Shown here piece after piece: positions 216 to 15,319 of a DNA stretch of 64,000 bases. This DNA comes from Octopus bimaculoides. Taxonomy: Eukaryota. Position numbers and translations under genes: made by a program. Under the pieces are notes generated by a model. The model saw only the letters and a list, made by a program, of their open reading frames with translations. It did no database searches and had not been told where the DNA came from. Numbering within the stretch: position 1 is the stretch's first letter; each line of letters begins with the position of its first letter. The stretch covers positions 19,204,881-19,268,880 of the forward strand of contig NC_068984.1 in assembly GCF_001194135.2 (NCBI RefSeq), written 5' to 3'.

Positions 216-1003
216 ATATATATATATATATATATATATACTTTTAATCTTTTATTTGTTTCAGTCATTTGACTATGGCCATGCTGGAACACTGCCTTTG
301 GCCGAACAAATCGACCCCAGAACTTATTCCTTGTAAGCCTAGTACTTATTCTATCAGTCTCTTTTGCCAAACCGCTAAGTTATGGGGACGTAAATACCCC
401 AGCATTGGTTGTCAAGCGATGGTAGGGGGATAAGATGCAGGGTAGATTTCCAATAACAAACATACATACACACACACATTTATTGTTGGCTGTCAGAAAA
501 AGGAGCACTCAATAACATATATTTTTTTAATCTTTTACTTGTTTCGGTTATTTGACTGTCGCAATGCTATGTCACTGCCTTGAAGGGTGTCAGTTGAACA
601 AATCAACCACAGGACTTATTTTTTTAAAGTCTAGTACTTATTCTATCAGGCCCTTTTGCTGAATCACTAAGTTATGAGGACGTAAACACACCAACAGACA
701 CACACACACATAAATTGGAGTCAACTAGAAGGAGTACGGTTGGACATTCACTTTTAATCATTACAATGCATGGAAACAATTGTAGTGATTTAAAGATGAA
801 TGCCCACCCACACTCCTTTTGATTCCAATTTTTTCAAATACACACACACATACATACACATAGACTCTGAAAAGCTGAAAGGCAAAGTTGACCATGGTAG
901 GATTTGAACTCAGAAAGCAGAGGTATTTTATCCAATGCCAAATGACTCTGCCAATTTCCAGTGTCTGTGGATAAAATGTAGAACTTAAATAAATGTAATT
1001 CAC

Positions 1004-1040
1004 AATGAATATTTGCAGCACAGCAGCAAAGTAGTAGAAG
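1004..1040 (-). CDS. SYNE1: Tentative 37-nt nesprin micro-exon
   Basis: Acceptor aatttttcag|CTT, donor T|GTGAAT, phase 0-1. Encodes LLLLCCCAANIH, which keeps the LLxxCxxxI spacing of nesprin MKLLGECSSSID expected next (recall). Confidence 0.4.
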
Positions 1041-1897
1041 CTGAAAAATTGAAGTCTTTTTTTTTTTTTATTATTTATATGAAGGTAATCAATCCTGCTA
1101 CTTGTCCTGCAATATCAAATCTGTTATTAAAAGTTTTCAGACATATCATGTCACATATTAGGTGATGTCAGACATAGGTGTCCTTTGTATTGCAGCATAG
1201 ACATCGGAAGTAGTTTTAGATGTATAGAAATGTTCAAATACTAATGGTTTCTATGAATTCTTTTAATCTTATTTGTTGTTTGAACATGGAAATGGAGAAG
1301 AAAAAATATAATAATTATACTTACTGGAGACCTCCTGATCGACTGCATTAATCGATGTGAGGCCAGGCCTAGCCTTAATCTGGCTATAAACTTCTGACAC
1401 ATTATCCACACTATCTTGACAGTCAGACATTATCTTAATCTGAAGAAAAACACATCAAGAAAAATATATTAATACATACATATAAACATCTATCATTCTT
1501 ACTGTCTTAAGATAAATAGCAATAAATATAGGAATTACAAACCTATGAATTGTCATGTGATTTTTATTGATATGAATTGACCAAAAGAATATTACTATAT
1601 AAGCAATACTTGCTTATAATGACCATACATTAAAGATTTCTTAAGAGGCAAGCAAAAAAATGTAGTTTCACCATTTAATACCATTTCTTTAATCAAAATT
1701 ACTAAAGAGGATATCACAGGAAAAATTCTCAAATTTTTGTACCCCTATTCTCTTTGGTTGTAATCCTTTTGAAACTGATTTTGATTGTCATCCCATTATG
1801 CCAACTGAATTTAAGATTTTAGCCATGCCTTTAAAAAAATTGGTATATTTTTTAAAAAAGGGAAAAAGAAAACTTTGTGTAAAATTGATTTACTTAC

Positions 1898-2082
1898 GTA
1901 GTCTCTTGTCTCATGATCCAGTTCTGGGCCAACTGGAGTTTGACATCTCAATTGCTCTTCTCCAATAACCATCTTTTGTGCACAGTTTTCCAGAGCAGAA
2001 AGCATTTTTTCAAGAGAAGCTTCCATTTCAGCATTTTGATTTACCTCAAGCAGTTCAATACGTATTTTGTTTCGGTGATCAT
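1898..2082 (-). CDS. SYNE1: Nesprin-1-like exon following the adaptive domain
   Basis: Acceptor atttttcaacag|AT, donor TAC|GTAAGT, phase 1-0. Encodes DDHRNKIRIELLEV..EEQLRCQTPVGPELDHETRDY, matching nesprin-1 RSKTPTGPELDTSYKGY (recall). Confidence 0.88.
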
Positions 2083-2149
2083 CTGTTGAAAAATATAATT
2101 CTAGAAAACAGAGAAGATTGATAATGATGATTGAATGAAGGAATGTGTG

Positions 2150-2725
2150 TAAGTTATTATTAAGTTTTATTTCAAGATTTCTTGGCAATAGAGAAAGAGC
2201 CAGTTTCTAACCAAGATCCAAGGCTCCTTCAATGGAATTTCAACATCAACAGCAGGGTATTTGTGCATGCATGTATGTGCAGTATTTGGAATCAGTGCAT
2301 GTGCAGATTTGTATGTTTTGTTTAATGTATGTATTCTCATGTATAAAGTTGCATGTCTAGACATGCACATATATACCTAAATGCTAAACTTCTGGAAAGT
2401 TCTACAAATTTTTACAGTTCCATTGATGGTTTGAATCTGTAATCTTCGAATTAGATTTCTCTTTTCTGGTTTTGAGAAACCTAATTTCTCAAAATTGGTG
2501 CTTAGGCAGCTTGTTACATATCCCAATGCCCCAACAAATACAGGTATAAACCTGAACTTGTAATCTGGGTAGAGTGACTGTAAATCTCTCAATAGTTCAG
2601 TTGATGTGTTTCCTTTTTCACTGATCTTTAGCTTTATGCTGACATTTGCTGGGCAGCTCATTTCCACTGCTGTACATAGTTTCTCTTCTCTGTTCCAAAT
2701 TACTATGTCTGGTCTATGATGTTTA
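2150..2725 (-). mobile_element. 5'-truncated non-LTR retrotransposon, restriction-enzyme-like endonuclease clade (R4/NeSL-like)
   Basis: ORF 2377-2667 (EMSCPANVSIK..SEK..YPDYKFRFIPVFVGALG..) resembles the C-terminal REL endonuclease region with its IPxxxGALG motif. It is followed by a 3' UTR-like segment and an AAT-rich tail. Confidence 0.7.
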
Positions 2726-2831
2726 CATTTTATTTAGGTTTTCATTAGGACATTCCACCAGTAATCTTTCAGCCATGTACTTGTGTGCATGTGCATGTGT
2801 GTGTGTGCATGCACCTGTGTGAGAGTGCATG

Positions 2832-2872
<41 letters not shown>

Positions 2873-3687
2873 GTGTGTGTATGTGTGTAATAAGAGAAAT
2901 TTATTTTCAGCAAAGACAAGTCATACCATCTGATATGGCTTGGTCACATATGGTTATATTGGATGTTATGTTTTGGAGTTCCTACTTCCTAATAGAAAAT
3001 GAAGACCATGCAACTACATTGATGTTATTGGCCAAGACTCACTGCATGGAACTGAGGACCTACCAAAGCTAATGGGGGACAGAGGTCTCTAGTGCAGTGT
3101 GGTGAAATGCATCTTGGTCACAGGTACTTGAGATGTATCACAAAGAATTACAAGTATCTCAACTGATATATCACAGGTTCCAATTCAGACATTTGTACTG
3201 AATTGCACTATGACCTTAAGCAAGTTATTTTATAATCTTTCCTTCAATATATTGGTAAAATCTTTCCCAGTTCTATCTAACATGTAAAATAATAGGTCCT
3301 CTGGCATATTTTTGTAACCATGAACACCTGAATGAAGCTTATGCATGAATCTCAAATTTCTTACTCACTTCATTATGGGAAGATTGTGAACTTTAAAGAA
3401 GTAAAAAGAAGTGTGTAAAAATAATGTATGACGAAAATATAGATTTTTCATGAAAGTCATGCAAATTATTTGTAATTTAATTTAATCCTAAGAACATCTA
3501 ATTGAGGAAACATAGACACCAACAAAACTTATTAAAAAGATAATGCAGACGATATTAGGTTATAAAATAAGAGAATGAAAGATAAAACTGAGTACCTGAT
3601 GGTGTTTTAAATGAATTTTTGTATTATTATATTATATTGATGTATAATTTTATCACAACACATCGACAGCATCGTTTTATTGGGTGT

Positions 3688-6512: not shown

Positions 6513-7739
6513 TGATATATATATGTATGTATGTGTGTGTGTGTGCATGCATATGAATGCTGAGATTCCATAGCTTGTCTTATTGTCAAAGTGAAATGGT
6601 GATTTGATGTTTGCACTCTTTGTTGACATAATGATTGATTAGTCTACTGCTTCAAATAAGTTCCTATCCAACCCATGCAAGTATGTAAAAATGAATGATA
6701 AATGAATGAACAAATGAACTGATATAAAGTTTGATGACAATATTTCTTTTAAGCTGAAGAACTTGTAAACTAATTTTAATGGTCATTTTAGAACTCTCTT
6801 AGATTATTTTGATTTTGTATTTGGTTAACAATATTCTTTATCTGAACTTATGTATTGAAGCATATTTTGTTGTATCTTGAGAAGGTCATTATGTGAATAA
6901 CAAACATATGTACTGGTTCTATTTTACTTTTTATTTGTCAATTGGTTAATTACCTAATCAATTAACTAAACAACTAATTAATCATTCAGTCAATCAATCA
7001 CTCAGTTAAGTCTGTCAAAGTCCTTTCATCGCTATTCATGACCTCTTCAATGACATGCCTTCTCTACTCCAGGACTGTCGGTCTGTTTCCCCTTAAATTC
7101 TTTTTCATAAGATTTACATTCTATTCACCACAATTTCAATAGCATCATAATTCAACTGCTAAAAGAAGAGATACTACAAGATGAATTACAATGACAATAA
7201 AATTCTGTGTTAGATTGTTAAAGTTTTTGAGACATCCTATTGAAAATGATTCTATTTAAAACACCTTTGCATTATTCATCAACACCTTCATATAATGTGA
7301 GGTTGCCAAGAATCTCCTCTTTCATAAAACACCTGTGCTTGTTGCTCTATTTTACTTTAGTCTCTCAACACCTGGTTTAAAATCACTTCCCTCAAATCAA
7401 ATACTACTCCACCAACTTAGGCAGGGGGTGGTGCATTTTCCTTTTCTTTACTTATCTTGCAAGTTACCTGTAGCCCTCACTAGTGCTGGCAGTATGAAAA
7501 CAATTACACAGAGCATTAGGAAAGGCATCCAACATGTAGTTACACTAGTCAATCCATTTCTTATTGTCCCTATTTAACTTCATTCCCATATCTTAAGCAA
7601 AACAAAAATTGTTGCTTCATTGAAATTTCAAAACAGCTTAAATTTCTCACATTCTTTATGAAAGAAGGAAAAGTTCATCATAGTGAATTTAAAAATGGTT
7701 AATGGTGATAGAGAAGAAGAAACTTTTATGAATAATTAC

Positions 7740-7805
7740 CAGAAGAAAATTGATCAGGTGGGCTTTGAACAAACCTACTTTCTTGCACTGGACTGTCTCG
7801 GATAT
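7740..7805 (-). CDS. SYNE1: Putative 66-nt symmetric cassette exon, copy A
   Basis: Acceptor tttttctttttttgattcttaccaag|AT, donor G|GTAATT, phase 1-1, open. Encodes DIRDSPVQESRFVQSPPDQFSS. Confidence 0.6.
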
Positions 7806-9254
7806 CTTGGTAAGAATCAAAAAAAGAAAAATTTGCTAATGTTGTGTCTACTGAAGCAATTCTTCATCAGAATATATTATCATTAAAACTTTTTACAAAT
7901 TTAAATAAGAGACAAACAGATAAGGATTGGCAACAGGGAGTGCATCTGATCTTAAAATGCTGCCTCAAATTGAATCCATGCCAGTATAGAAAAATGGACA
8001 TCACTTGCATATTAAAAAAAGATCAGAACAATATTTCTTTAAGACTGAAAAACTGATAATAGTTTTTTTTTTGTTTTTTTTTAGATATTCTTATGCAGGT
8101 TATTTTCATAAATGTTATATTTCTTTTCACTGTCTTATTTGTGAGGTTTCATGATGTAAAATTTCCACGAAGAAAAAGTAATACAAGGAAAGGGAAAAAT
8201 AAAACCCAGAAAACCAGATAGGAACAATACTGCAATGACCAATTTCAATAACATTTAAATTTAGGTATTAATAAAAAAAAAAAAAGAAAGAAAAAGAAAG
8301 AAAAAGAGATACTATAAGGTGAACTATAATAAAAATTGTTAAAGTCTGAGACATCCCATGCTTATTCCACTGTTATACTTTAGCCTTTTAATACCTGGTA
8401 TAAAATCAACTCCCCCCCCCACCATCATATACTGTGCCCACCACTTAGTTAAGGGATCTTTTTCCATTTTCCTGATCTCTTCTCTTCTTGCAAGCCACTT
8501 GGTAACCTCATTAGGGCTGGTGGTATGAAAGCAAATACTCAGCACAAATTGTAAAGTGACTGGCATTAGGAAGGGCATCCAGCTGTTGAAATCAAGCCAA
8601 AGCTGACATTGGAGCTAGATTCTGTCACGCCATCCAACACATACCAGCATAGAAAACAGACATTAAATGATGATGATGATGATGATTGTCTTCACAACTG
8701 ACATTGTAATCTAGAATTTCACTCACTGGCTAGCAGGATATATAGTTTGGTAAAAAAATGAAATGAAGAACTCAAATTTTAGATTTGCAGGTTATTCTAA
8801 GAATAGAAGTGTTAAGATTCTGTTTCATATTGCTGACTGAAGAGCTCCAACAATCACATTAGCAGCATCAATGATCAACTAGATGCTTATTCAATCTGCT
8901 AGAAATAGTAACCAAACCTCCCTCATACCACATTTATACTATTTTAAAAACATAAGGATTATTTTGCATAAAGTATATCTAGACACACTATGTCAGAAAT
9001 AAAAGATGAGATTGTCTTAAATTATTACGAGAAGGCAAGTTGCATGTTTCTTGCATGTATAGTTACATCCATCAATCTATTTTACCTCAGACCCACATCC
9101 TAGGCAAGACAAAAATTGCTACAAAAGCTTTTTTCTTCATTGTAATTTCAAAACAAATTTCTCACATTCTCCATGAGAGAAAGAAAAGTTCATCTTAGTG
9201 AATTTATAAATTGTTAATTGTGATGGAGAAGAAGAAACTTTTATGAATAATTAC

Positions 9255-9320
9255 CAGAAGAAAATTGATCAGGTGGCCTTTGAATAAACCTGCTTTCTAA
9301 CACTGGACTGTCTCGGGTAT
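9255..9320 (-). CDS. SYNE1: Putative 66-nt symmetric cassette exon, copy B
   Basis: Acceptor ttttcttttattgaattttatcaag|AT, donor G|GTAATT, phase 1-1, open. Encodes DTRDSPVLESRFIQRPPDQFSS. Confidence 0.6.
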
Positions 9321-10614
9321 CTTGATAAAATTCAATAAAAGAAAATTTATTAATGTTGTGTCTACTGAAGCAATTCTTCATCAGAATATATTATCATTAT
9401 ATTATCAAAATTTTTTTACAAATTAAAAAAAAAAAAGAAGAAATAAACAGATAAGGGTTGACAACAGGAAGTACATCTAATCTTAAAATGCTGCCTCAAG
9501 TTGGATCCATGTCAATATAGAAAAATGGACATTAATTGTGCATAAAAAAGGATCATACTGAAAAATTGATTAGTTTTTTTTATTTTCTTATTTAGATCAT
9601 TTTCATAAACAGTATATTCCCTTTCACTGTCTTATTTTGAGGTTTACATGATGTAAAATTTCCACCAAGGAGGAATAAATAAAGTGAAAACAAAAAAAAT
9701 AATAAACCTCACAAAACTAAATAGGAACAATATCGCTACATCCAAATTCAATAACGTCATAGTTTAGCCACAAACAAAAAGAGTTACTACAAGATGTACT
9801 ACAGTAAAATTCTGTGTCCGAATATTAAAACTGTTGAGACATCCTGTCAAAATGATTCTATTTTAAATAACTTTGCATCATTCATCACCCTACCCTCACA
9901 ATCCACATTGTATTCTAGAATTACAATGACAAGACATAATGTGTAATAAAAAATTATATGAAAGAGCTATATTCGTATTTATGGATTGTTCTAAATATAG
10001 ATGTATAAATGTTCTATTCGATATTGCTGAGTGAAAAGGTCTAACCATAATAATTAGCAGGGTGCAATGAATAACTAAATGGCAAATAAACCTGTTAGAA
10101 ATAGCAACCAAATCTCCCTCATATCCCATGTGCAGTCTTGAAAAGGTTACAGTACACTAAATAATGTAGTTCTTGATATATTATGTCTGAAATTTGAGAG
10201 AGGATGGTCATGTTTGGAATATCTTTGATCATGCCTCTGAATCAGGATTACTCTGAGCTAAACAACAGCAGCAGCAGCACTGTCAACAGCAGCAACAACA
10301 ACCAAGTACAAGTGAGATCCACACTGGAGTACTACTCATATCATAATAGTATCAACAATTTCTAGCTAACTTTTCTTTTCCATGATAATCCTGTTAATAT
10401 TTCAAGAAGAACATTTCCCAAGGTCTTATTTTGGAATAAAACATACTTATTTTGATTAATAACTAGGTTTAATTTCCTTCATTTCACTCATAACTTTGGC
10501 AAAACAAAAATATTTACAATGTTCCTTTTTATCCCTTTCTAATTTCAAGGCAATTTCAAATTTTTTTTCTTCAAATTTCTGAACCCTCTAAGTCACACAT
10601 TTCATATCTACTGT

Positions 10615-10935
10615 CTTAGTGAAATTGTGTGGCTTAATGCTCAGAGTATTTGACTCAGGGTCATATGATCATGGGTTTAATTCCTGGCAGTGCACTGTAT
10701 CCTTGAGCAAGATACTTTATTTCACATTACTCCAGTCCATTCAGCTGGAGAAATGAGTTTGTACCTGTAATTCAAAGGGGCCAGCCTTGTCACATTCTGT
10801 GCTGTTATGAATCTCCCTGAGAGTATACATGTCTGTGGAGTGCTCAGCCACTTGCATGTTAATTTTACGAGCAGGCTGTTTCATTGCTTGGATCAACTGG
10901 AACCCTCATTGTCATAACTGACGGAGTGTCAGTCA
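10615..10935 (+). mobile_element. tRNA-derived SINE
   Basis: Degenerate A/B boxes (tggcttaatgc.., gggtttaattcc) and a body shared with 18080-18255, 57310-57630 (minus strand) and 62085-62400. Confidence 0.75.
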
Positions 10936-11314
10936 TCAACCGTATTAAGAATGTAAGGATGCATTGAACAATCTAGTCTTGGGATGTCCTTGAACTATTA
11001 GGAACTGGCAAGTTGCATATATCCCTTCCATCCAGATACACCCATCACACACTTATCTTATTACCCCTATTCTACCTTACACCCATATCCTAGGTAAACA
11101 AAATAAAAGTTTACAAAATTATTTGCCTTCTTTCTAATTCCAAAGTGTTTTCTAATTTTCCTTCATAATTTTCTGACAACTTTTTCTTTCTAATTTCAAA
11201 ACAATTTTTTTTCTAAATTTATACAACTTTTGATAACGAAAAGTAAAAGGGATTGATGGGAAATACAGAGCTGTTGAAGATAATGGAGAAGATGGTAAGT
11301 TTGTAAATAATTAC

Positions 11315-11411
11315 CAATTCGTTGTAGGGTAACCTTATTTTCTGGTTGTGGTCTTTCAAGCACCAAATGTCGATAATCTTGGTCATATGGAGAAGTGTGA
11401 GGTTGATCAAA
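11315..11411 (-). CDS. SYNE1: Nesprin-1-like exon, short adaptive-domain-equivalent segment
   Basis: Not in the ORF track. Acceptor ctcttttactag|TTT, donor G|GTAATT, 97 nt, phase 0-1. Encodes FDQPHTSPYDQDYRHLVLERPQPENKVTLQRI. It bridges the phase-0 end at 15119 to the phase-1 start at 2082. Confidence 0.72.
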
Positions 11412-12806
11412 CTAGTAAAAGAGAAAAATAGTAAGATCTAAAATCCAAAGAAAGTGGCAGTGATCTATACTGGCAAAAGCTAATCAATTAAAGTGCATTG
11501 ATTGAAAAAAAAATTACAATGATTGATTAGCAGTGATGAACAAAAAATTCCCTTTTTTAGAAACTTGTTCTTCTAGAAAAGAAGAATTATATACAAACCA
11601 ATATAGAGACCAATGAAGCACTTGTTAAGAAGCAGCAGCTCTCTTAGCTTCCCTCTCTATTTTCATTCAAAAGAAGGACAAGTGTCTGAAAAGTTGAATT
11701 TTTCACACCTCATGGCAAATCATTCATTGGATATTTTCTTTTATTTTTTAATCAATGAATATTTATGGCAACAGAGGAAATTTAGTCAAGTTTTAAAGAA
11801 AGAATCAATTTCTAGGAACTAAATGCCTTGTGATATCTAGTTACATTCTTTTAGGTTTCGATTTCAAATCAGGCCAGGGTTGTTTTCATTTTTATCATTC
11901 CAGGACACGTAAATACTTAGTTGACTCAATCAACTTTGTGCCCCAACCTACTTCATCATCATCATCATCATCATTATCATCAGGACATTACTATGACAAG
12001 TCCTAGGACTCCTAGGGCTACTTACTCAGTTTTTATGATGTATAAATGACTGAGATCACAACATCGCCCCTGGACAGGATGCCAGTCTGTTTCAGAGTTA
12101 CTCATCTACTATTGAATGGACTAGTGCAATGTGAAATGAAGTTGTTTTGCTCAAGTATACAATGCACTGCCTGGTCCAGGAATCGAAACAATGATCGTAC
12201 AGTCACGAGTGAAACACCCTAACCACTAGGCTAGGGTGCCTTCACTACCCTGAATTTCCAACTGTTACAATGTATTTGAGTTTATGTGGAAATATTTAGG
12301 TAGATTGAGAACAGGATTAGGCATAAAAGTGCACAGGCATAGCTACATGATGAGATGGTCAGCAACACTTTGCAATATCTTTTATCTTTTACTTGTTTAA
12401 GTGATTTGACAGTGGCCATGCTGGGGCACTGCCTTGAAGCCTTTTTAGTTGAATTTTAAGCCTAGTGCTTATTATATTGAACTCTTTTGCTGAACCACTA
12501 AGAAGTATGTAAAGTATGTCAAGCAGTGAGGGAGGGGACAAACACATGCATATGTATATATATATATCATCATCATCGTTTAATGTCTGTTTTCCATGCT
12601 GGCGAGGCTTTGGTCAGCCTGAGGCTATGGTAAAAGACACTTGCCTAGGGTGCCACACAGTGGGACTGAACCCAGAACGATGTGGTCAGGACACAAACTT
12701 CTTACCACACAGCCAAACCATTTAAGAGTGGTTTACACTCTAGTGGTGATTCAAAACTGAACTGCTAAGTAGTTGGTCAGACATTATCATCAAACCACAG
12801 TAGTTT

Positions 12807-13241: not shown

Positions 13242-15118
13242 TAAAGTCAGGTTGTGTGTGTGTGTGTGTGTGCATAAACCCACATAACTTCTGAAGTTCA
13301 CAACTGATTTTCTCCAAACTGGAAACGTACATTACCTATGTTCCAGAGATGGTTTCAGACTCTTAAAACTTTTCACATAAAGAGTAACAGGCCCTCTGGG
13401 AGCAGAAAATACCCTTTCCTGGGTTATGTGGAGAAGGGAGATAACTCTTTGTGAAGTAACTTTCAGAAGTTGATTGTCTCCTTTACATCCAGCACCATTA
13501 ATCTGCTAAACGTTTTTCATCTTTTTAAAATATTGATATTAATTAATGTTTTTATTGACATTTAATTATTAACATAACAGTGTCATCTCAGTTCATTATA
13601 TGTATTTCTTAAAATTCGCTAAGCTATTGATATTATTTGCTTTTTCTTTACTGACATTTCATAATTAACGTACAATTGTCATCTTCCAATGAACGCATGA
13701 CATGTCACTTAGTTGAATTAGCCCATCATTTATTCCACAAATGTTTTGTTGTCAACGCTGCACTTCTCTGTATCACATGTTTCAACATAACTGTAATATA
13801 TATACAGGCTATGCTATTTCAATCCTGAGCAATGCTGAGCATCTCTGCTAGTATACTATAAAGTATATCAAATGTTTAATATACTTTATAGTATCAGTTT
13901 CCATCTACCAAATCCACATATGTATATAAATATATATTATTGTGATAGCAAGAGTCCATCCATAAGCTCTGTTGCCATCATTGAAATGTACACTCAGCAT
14001 AATTGTGTACTGACTTCTTATTTGTATTATGGTCTTCTTATATCTATACTGGTCATATTTCATATATACATGTGTATGTACATATGTGTGTGTGAATATA
14101 TATATATATATANNNNNNNNNNNNNNNNNNNNNNNNNNNNNNNNNNNNNNNNNNNNNNNNNNNNNNNNNNNNNNNNNNNNNNNNNNNNNNNNNNNNNNNN
14201 NNNNNNNNNNNNNNNNNNNNNNNNNNNNNNNNNNNNNNNNNNNNNNNNNNNNNNNNNNNNNNNNNNNNNNNNNNNNNNNNNNNNNNNNNNNNNNNNNNNN
14301 NNNNNNNNNNTATGGCAGAAAAGTCATGACAGCCATTATTTAAAACATTTTATTGATAGTATTTGTTGCTTCAAATGGCTCTCATAATTTTTTTGCAACA
14401 TAATTATGTACACACGCACACACACTCACATGCCATCAATAACTTTGGAAGAAGCAAAATATTAAAAAAAGGAATTACTAAAAAGTGTATATAGCTGCAT
14501 CTATATAGAATTTATTTTTAGACAATTAAAATGAATATTAATAACATTTTAAGTAACCTTTGCATAAAAATATTATCAATATTACATACTTAATATATGT
14601 GTGCTGTTTAAATGCCAGAAGCTGTTTTTTTTTTTTTTTTTTTTTTTTTTTTGTCTGGTAAAAATTCCTCTAAAGATGCATTGTGTTAAGAAACAATGTC
14701 CTTCAGAGTTAGGCAAAACGAAATTGCCTGACAAGTGATCACAAGAGTGACAAATACGTATCTCATAATTGTTACAACTTCTCGGTGTCCTTTATTTGTG
14801 TCACTTCTGAAACAAAATCAAATCTGTTCATTTGAAAAATGACAGAGAATATATAAATGATCTGTTGCTTTTTGGATCACTTCTGGGTCAATTTTGTTTC
14901 ACCTAGCTCTGAAGTATATTGTGTTTTTCTTTAACATTATATATCTTTAAAGGGATTTTCCCAGGATGGAAAAAAACAGCTTCTGGAGTTTAAACATATA
15001 TATGTTAAGTATATTGTGTTGTTATTGTTTTATTATAGAGTGGCTTCTATTGCATAATTTGAGTTTAACCTATGTATGTCCGAACAGAATCAAAATGTAA
15101 CAGAAAAGTTATAATTAC

Positions 15119-15319
15119 TATATCCTTTTCAACGTTCATTTTCTCACACATTGCATGCAGTCGTTCCATAACAAAGTCATGATAGGTCTGGAACTCGTCA
15201 ACTTCTTTCTGCAAATGAGTTTTACCGCTGACCTCCTCAACCATTTCTAGCAGTTGATCAGTTATATCTCCAAACCGCTGGAATTTGTTGTTCTTCATGT
15301 TCTCTTCATGTTTAATTTC
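15119..15319 (-). CDS. SYNE1: Nesprin-1-like exon, last spectrin helix before the adaptive domain
   Basis: Acceptor ttacttctag|GAA, phase 0. Encodes EIKHEENMKNNKFQRFGDITDQLLEM..FVMERLHAMCEKMNVEKDI. Donor ATA|GTAATT was chosen because it fits the phase of the next exon; an upstream T|GTGAGA donor is an alternative. Confidence 0.8.

Follow-up and report, generated by a model that had tools for sequence, protein, structure and literature searches.

Tandem duplication of a 66-nt exon in a nesprin-1/2-like gene of Octopus bimaculoides, with both copies joined in series in the transcripts examined

This study concerns two short exons, here termed A and B, on the minus strand of a 64,000-nucleotide (nt) stretch of the genome of Octopus bimaculoides (assembly GCF_001194135.2, contig NC_068984.1, positions 19,204,881 to 19,268,880; this whole stretch is referred to as the window and numbered from its first letter). 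They belong to a nesprin-1/2-like (SYNE) gene, and they very probably represent an ordinary tandem exon duplication of which both copies are constitutive and spliced in series. On this reading an intron stretch of approximately 1.5 kb, carrying a symmetric 66-nt coding exon of phase 1-1, was duplicated in tandem, both copies retained working splice sites, and they are spliced constitutively into the mRNA between the upstream and the downstream exon, A before B, so that the protein has a direct repeat of 2 x 22 residues, D[TI]RDSPV[LQ]ESRF[IV]Q[RS]PPDQFSS. The exons concerned are as follows (a slash marks an exon boundary here and below).

11315..11411, minus strand: upstream exon, 97 nt, FDQPHTSPYDQDYRHLVLERPQPENKVTLQRI, with which the disordered linker opens, donor G/GTAATT; defined by sequence and by its junction to A
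9320..9255, minus strand: exon A, 66 nt, phase 1-1, open, encoding (D)TRDSPVLESRFIQRPPDQFSS
7805..7740, minus strand: exon B, 66 nt, phase 1-1, open, encoding (D)IRDSPVQESRFVQSPPDQFSS
1898..2100, minus strand: downstream exon with the TPVGPELD helix; the major acceptor gives a start at 2100 (adding ELYFST), the minor one a start at 2082

The use of these exons was assessed in 11 covered RNA runs from six studies, with raw reads of the same organism in X21, X22 and X23; run X24, in which the gene is uncovered, was left out of this count. Reads were placed separately over 7000-11500 and 1800-2776, and joins from B to the downstream exon were taken from loose read ends rather than from joints. 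The chain upstream exon, A, B, downstream exon was recovered in 11 of the 11 runs. The junction 11315 to 9320 (upstream exon to A) was crossed by 75, 88 and 67 reads in X21, X22 and X23, respectively, and the junction 9255 to 7805 (A to B) by 111, 85 and 71 reads, and B was joined to the downstream exon in 106, 93 and 92 reads (six ambiguously placed X22 reads being excluded), all three on the minus strand with GT..AG sites. Reads running into the downstream exon bear the end of B-type sequence (GTTCAAAGCCCACC... or ...GTTCAAAGCCCACCTGATCAATTTTCTTCT) with an agreement of 0.98-1.0, and single 150-nt reads cross both upstream to A and A to B. Mean depth in X21, X22 and X23 was 110, 125 and 86 over the upstream exon, 125, 112 and 89 over exon A, 126, 116 and 100 over exon B, and 123, 110 and 92 over the downstream exon. 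Additionally, assembled transcripts of 1.6-28.5 kb carrying upstream exon, A and B contiguously were present in X1, X2, X6, X7, X8, X9, X11 and X13. An A-skipping junction from the upstream exon to B did not reach 3 reads in X21-X23, for which the list of joints is complete (98% likeness, 1% threshold), and transcripts with one copy or neither were not seen across the 11 runs, which carry no tissue labels. Skipping of both exons is bounded at less than approximately 2%, and skipping of A at less than approximately 4%. An earlier sequence-only reading of the window had proposed A and B as genuine, frame-preserving exons; both are present in junction reads and in assembled transcripts, and are thus real and expressed.

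At the sequence level, A and B each show a T-rich tract ending in CAAG/ on the 5' side and CTG/GTAATT on the 3' side. Translated in phase 1, with the G supplied by the preceding exon, they read DTRDSPVLESRFIQRPPDQFSS (A) and DIRDSPVQESRFVQSPPDQFSS (B). They are identical at 60 of 66 nt, with six nt differences and no indels (tblastn E = 1.7e-9); one of the six differences is synonymous and the other five lead to four amino-acid changes. All of this agrees with the anatomy given by the sequence-only reading, namely two open 66-nt copies of phase 1-1 with a pyrimidine-rich acceptor, a G/GTAATT donor, six nt differences and no indels. The window has precisely two occurrences of a 22-nt string spanning the donor, as against 0.01 expected by chance, while sensitive blastn and tblastn searches detected no third copy of the exon in the window. 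A tandem duplication of approximately 1.5 kb holds both exons, with repeat families at a 1.5-kb spacing, and 9755-9121 and 8252-7602 share 79.5% identity over 677 columns including 68 gap columns (BLAST self-comparison and alignment). The exons are adjacent, of the same length and phase and set in homologous flanking intron, as is characteristic of tandem exon duplication, and the homology of the flanking intron implies that a genomic segment was duplicated and not the exon alone. The duplicated segments and the blocks within them are listed here.

9077..9887, minus strand: duplication unit 1, containing exon A (repeat families D1-D5, D8, D9, D13-D15 and D17; BLAST self-comparison; alignment)
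7570..8336, minus strand: duplication unit 2, containing exon B (repeat families; BLAST self-comparison; alignment)
7131..7281, minus strand: incomplete third copy, covering the upstream (5') end of the unit and lacking an exon, 78% identical to 9887-9743 (families D9 and D11-D13)
9351..9399, minus strand: intronic block of 49 nt upstream of A, matching 7837-7885 upstream of B at 100% identity (alignment)
9226..9276, minus strand: block of 51 nt that spans the donor of A (22 nt at the exon end and 29 nt of intron), 100% identical to 7711-7761 at B (alignment)

The sequence-only reading had called for a comparison of exon and intron divergence, which corrects one point of that reading. The intron shows 10 gap openings in 694 columns. 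Exon identity (90.9%) is not above that of the intron flanks within 100 nt on either side (91.1%; Fisher p = 1.0), and it is the distal intron, at 77%, that stands apart from exon and proximal intron taken together (p = 2e-6). At the observed density of gap openings 0.95 indels would be expected per 66 nt (P = 0.39 for none), and the absence of indels from the exon is therefore by itself no evidence of selection. The 49-nt block upstream of A is a candidate branch-point or splicing-enhancer region, or alternatively a gene-conversion tract, and in the A-type and B-type contigs of three close relatives (organisms B, C and D) 9351-9400 carries no differences. The identical intron blocks may more generally represent signals by which such short exons are defined, or tracts of conversion between the two copies. 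The 51-nt block assembles collapsed at double depth in run X16 (9226-9268 at a depth of 90 against approximately 40-46 in its flanks), while genomic DNA depth over A and B is at the single-copy level, by which an origin of the exons from a dispersed repeat was ruled out.

DNA contigs of the same three relatives, which differ by approximately 3-4% in the intron, were used to follow the two copies across species. Each of organisms B, C and D has a distinct copy of A type and another of B type, each set in flanks of its own, both in frame, with no exon indels and with AG and GT sites unchanged; frameshifts or lost splice sites, which the sequence-only reading had named as evidence against its proposal, are thus not seen in these orthologous copies. 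Changes in exon A are synonymous at 9300 and 9316 (organisms B, C and D) and at 9286 (organism B), with a Ser to Pro change at 9261 in organism C, while exon B carries Arg to Pro and Asp to Gly changes in organisms B and C and a Ser to Gly change in organism B. Judged from these substitutions, constraint on the peptide appears weak, as would be expected of a disordered spacer. The divergence of the paralogous introns, approximately 23%, is several-fold that between the species, indicating that the duplication long predates them. One low-depth contig (4.9x) of organism D in X19, matching 9183-9389 and 7512-7875, combines an A-like exon with a B-like downstream intron; this mosaic reflects either chimeric assembly across the identical 51-nt stretch or gene conversion between the copies in that species.

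A more distant locus, L002 (ENA ERZ21867824, ctg80018l), retains the downstream exon at 55% identity and the next exon at 68%. The orthologue of the downstream exon at 10155-10348 begins ...VNKEEWWLRFKEELS and keeps RCQTPVGPEVD and the exon end ...NY/GT; the next exon (IKIMSDCQASVENV...) follows 1.8 kb downstream, and the upstream intron holds an element bearing a reverse transcriptase (990-3106). In the 10 kb upstream of this orthologue neither A/B-like nor upstream-exon-like sequence was detected by tblastn, a phase-1-1 exon scan and motif scans, although A and B evolve at approximately the intron rate and the intron may be longer there. The second distant locus, L001, measures 1.6 kb.

The identity of the gene was derived from its minus-strand open segments, which match the Pfam family Spectrin with E = 3e-23 and 3e-12 and Spectrin_SYNE1 with 44.6 bits (cut-off 35). 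Residues 6123-6421 of mouse nesprin-2 (spectrin repeats, SR, 52-53; sequence from the supplement of PMC13001094) matched exons at approximately 20.8, 19.6 and 15.3 kb by BLASTP with E = 4e-25. Among 1.84 billion representative proteins, 150 matches were obtained with HMMER, most of the long ones ending in a KASH tail, and dystrophin spectrin repeats were the sole matches in a sequence search of the PDB. By these sequence comparisons the gene is classed as nesprin-1/2-like. In the assembled transcripts, approximately 2.0-2.1 kb separate exon B from the end on the 3' side, from which it follows that the last exons of the gene lie beyond the start of the window. Nothing relevant on nesprin in octopus was found in the literature, and the 144-residue peptide encoded from the upstream exon through A and B to the downstream exon had no match at E <= 1e-3 in a library of homologous proteins that seemingly holds almost no cephalopod transcripts.

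The position of A and B was defined relative to DV23, a small exon of vertebrate nesprins. DV23 comprises 69 nt (23 residues), starts with Asp-Val, is highly conserved (57% identity even between human nesprin-1 and -2) and is tissue-regulated (Duong et al. 2014, PMC3981789), and the STAR domain with its LEWD motif precedes it by 114 nt, or approximately 38 residues (Holt et al. 2019, PMC6775114). In the nesprin-1-like protein P0003 the order is ...SIPLEWDHDYDL, 31 residues, DVVIPESPEAYVKLTESAIRNSS (DV23) and GDPSALESQIRQLGKALDDSRFHMQPTETIIRSKTPTGPELDSSYRGYMKLLGECSGSIDSVK, the layout thus running from LEWD through DVVIPESPEAYVKLTESAIRNSS to GDPSALESQ...TPTGPELD, while the window presents SR52/53-like exons, the upstream exon, A, B and ...RCQTPVGPELD. 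The downstream exon together with the next one (...MEASLEKMLSALENCAQKMVIGEEQLRCQTPVGPELDHETRDY/IKIMSDCQDSVDNV...) aligns to the TPTGPELD segment of P0003 with E = 2e-13; B ends approximately 25 residues before the aligned helix, and DV23 in P0003 approximately 5 residues before it. These alignments, together with that of nesprin-2, place A and B in the same inter-repeat disordered linker as DV23, N-terminal of the TPxGPELD helix, in agreement with the position between the exon on the adaptive-domain side and the TPxGPELD exon that the sequence-only reading had assigned to them. An AlphaFold single-sequence model of low confidence (mean predicted local distance difference test score, pLDDT, of 41) predicts the upstream exon, A and B as an 88-residue coil between helices and lends weak support to a coil in this region.

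In nesprin-1/2 the same inter-repeat linker, after the repeats that align to the BicD2-binding SR52 and SR53 of nesprin-2, holds the adaptive domain/STAR with the LEWD motif that binds kinesin-1 light chain. The linker in the window differs in that LEWD is not detectable there: none of the minus-strand frames of the window contains the pattern [LIMVF][ED]W[ED]. A STAR profile built from 44 nesprins, in which the W-acidic LEWD motif is conserved together with an upstream [ST]P.S context, scored the upstream exon at -2.4 bits, a value reached by 3281 of 5000 shuffles. On its 5' side the upstream exon is joined to the exon ending ...CEKMNVEKDI at approximately 15068 (loose end at 11411, agreement 0.97-0.99), and RNA thus connects the SR53-like exon (15068-15319) to the upstream exon without an intervening exon that could contain LEWD. 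Two resemblances noticed by eye were rejected as neither is supported by the STAR profile, namely that of SPYDQDY in the upstream exon to LEWDHDY (a Y-acidic replacement, Trp to Tyr) and that of ELYFSTDD to LEWD.

One alternative to constitutive inclusion is that A and B are tissue-regulated cassettes giving four isoforms (none, A, B or both), like vertebrate DV23, which was the central proposal of the sequence-only reading. This would be compatible with the symmetry of the 66-nt exons, any combination of which stays in frame, with the tissue regulation of DV23 in the same linker region (PMC3981789), and with the unusual conservation of the intron beside both exons (91% within 100 nt on either side versus 77% farther away, with the 49-nt and 51-nt identical blocks). 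The transcripts themselves, however, contain A and B in series in all of the 11 covered runs (six studies), at equal depth over all four exons, with no joins from the upstream exon to B at or above 3 reads against 67-88 reads into A, and with loose ends at the downstream acceptor that belong to exon B at 0.98-1.0, so that fewer than approximately 2% skip both. A combinatorial module is consequently unlikely. Certain points nevertheless weigh against the constitutive reading: Logan contigs drop rare variants, the raw reads come from three runs only, each sampled at approximately 6%, and skipping of B (A joined to the downstream exon) is bounded only indirectly through equal depths and equal junction counts, at roughly <10-15%. 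As the 11 runs carry no labels of tissue, stage or sex, the exons might be skipped in some tissue. A strongly conserved flanking intron is, furthermore, often a mark of regulated cassette exons, and the substitutions in the relatives (four non-synonymous to three synonymous in total, 3:0 in exon B) accumulate at approximately the intron rate, so that the peptide shows little purifying selection and any specific motif function would be hypothetical. Artefact is a further alternative, either as assembly haplotypes that were collapsed or expanded or as open frames that arose by chance within a repeated intron element and are not really spliced. The window does contain N-run assembly gaps, the copies are 90% alike and one organism D contig is an A/B mosaic; yet single 150-nt RNA reads span upstream to A and A to B, two distinct copies, each within its own flanks, are told apart in independent genomic contigs of four species, and canonical splice sites are used, which leaves this explanation with a practically negligible probability.

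A separate question is whether A and B descend from the ancestral DV23 exon, having been duplicated in this lineage and having diverged beyond recognition. Both are small symmetric exons of similar size to DV23 (22 versus 23 residues), in the same protein region between the SR52/53-type repeats (SR70/71) and the next repeat with its TPxGPELD helix, and both start with Asp, like DV23, and end with SS, as do many DV23 sequences. A DV23-like sequence with its consensus was found in 10 library proteins, including P0025, which is the most divergent of the ten in DV23 and its surroundings. DV23 (Delta-SR) of SYNE1/SYNE2, by contrast, is a single copy with the consensus DV.I[PT]E.PE[AS][YF].K and an inclusion that ranges from approximately 10% to 100% between tissues, while A and B measure 66 rather than 69 nt, are duplicated, start with DT (A) or DI (B) and are included in every run examined. 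A DV23 profile hidden Markov model (HMM) of 11 sequences scored A at -2.3 bits (equalled by 3154 of 5000 shuffles) and B at -0.6 bits (488 of 5000), i.e. no better than shuffled sequence, and the LEWD/STAR landmark expected upstream was not detected. Vertebrate DV23 would likewise be of phase 1-1, a split Asp codon at its start having been named by the sequence-only reading. Homology of A and B to DV23, which that reading had suggested, is thus not supported by the sequence comparison. As A and B evolve at approximately the intron rate, any ancestral signal would be lost from the sequence, and descent from DV23 is best regarded as a doubtful possibility. A more elaborate version seems quite improbable: the unit would be the diverged counterpart of DV23 in this lineage, in a nesprin that has lost the kinesin-binding LEWD motif; its duplication, with a Ser-Pro site and an acidic/aromatic PPDQFSS tail in the unit, would offer a motor or adaptor two sites for docking or phosphorylation; and inclusion would be regulated in a tissue or stage outside the sampled runs.

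Constitutive splicing of both copies in series therefore remains the favoured reading of the duplication. Its effect on the protein may be a longer flexible linker, or a doubled short linear motif, with little constraint on the exact sequence. The second 22-residue unit would lie in a flexible linker beside the repeats matching the BicD2-binding repeats of nesprin-2; a docking or phosphorylation role of the unit, for which Ser-Pro and PPDQFSS could be considered, is speculation. The better-known outcome of tandem exon duplication is a mutually exclusive choice between the copies (PMC9013439), which does not apply to A and B. Tandem exon duplications in which both copies are constitutive, yielding an internal peptide repeat, are also known, and the present case shows no essential difference from these.

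The only alternative splicing observed at this locus concerns the downstream exon, which can start at either of two 3' splice sites spaced by 18 nt. The sequence-only reading had placed this exon at 1898-2082; the exon is real, but it mostly starts at 2100, with 2082 as a minor acceptor. B was joined to 2100 in 101, 93 and 73 reads of X21, X22 and X23, and the contigs of X1 and X8 also use 2100, while the join to 2082 was found in 5 of 106, 0 of 93 and 19 of 92 reads, respectively. A single-nucleotide polymorphism (SNP) lies at the minor acceptor.

2085, minus strand: SNP, C>G in mRNA sense, by which Arg replaces Thr in the long form and CAG/ becomes GAG/ at the minor acceptor

X22 is fixed for the G allele (105 of 107 reads), as is the X1 contig, and the loose end of the X8 contig shows it as well. 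Use of the minor acceptor tracks this SNP, with 0 of 93 reads in X22 versus 19 of 92 in X23 (Fisher p = 6e-7), and the two together look like a natural splice quantitative trait locus. Additionally, A>G mismatches in mRNA sense were observed in X22 only, at 2008 (7 of 114 reads, Lys to Glu) and 2021 (6 of 110 reads, synonymous) of the minus strand, and these are possible A-to-I editing sites.

Some further observations concern the reads and the intron around A and B. In a few reads the end of an exon is connected to the start of the same exon, 66 nt back, from B to B in 1, 5 and 1 reads and from A to A in 0, 2 and 3 reads of X21, X22 and X23, respectively. These are most likely due to reverse-transcriptase template switching between the repeats or to ambiguous placement, although a rare allele with three copies is conceivable. 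The intron that follows the 97-nt upstream exon begins with sequence (11215-11316, minus strand; TG/GTAATTATTTACAAAC...TCTTCTCCAT...) resembling the intron starts after A (9155-9256) and B (7640-7741), with local alignment scores of 21-24 as against 12 +- 1.8 for dinucleotide shuffles (reached by none of 300). This likeness of sequence among the three suggests an older common origin of the donor regions or, alternatively, a common intronic splicing element. The intron segments 8057-8358, 8510-8811, 10020-10321 and 10624-10925 reach word depths of up to 10^5-10^6 in DNA and RNA runs alike, with numerous joints that are chimeric or on opposite strands and, near 10261-10302, a microsatellite of CAA/CAG type; they are high-copy transposable-element fragments and simple repeats, unrelated to A and B, which dominate read placement over the intron.

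For the annotation of this genome, the results provide two real coding exons, a corrected boundary for the exon that follows (2100 rather than 2082) and a fixed reading frame for the C-terminal region of a giant nesprin gene. With regard to exon evolution, they offer a clean case of a tandem duplication in which both copies are constitutive instead of mutually exclusive; no long-standing question is opened by them. The lack of a detectable LEWD motif beside repeats that match the BicD2 site raises the question of how kinesin-1 is recruited in this animal. The nesprin linker, which in vertebrates holds both LEWD and DV23, appears to be evolutionarily plastic, LEWD being undetectable in the animal studied and a 2 x 22-residue repeat having been gained.

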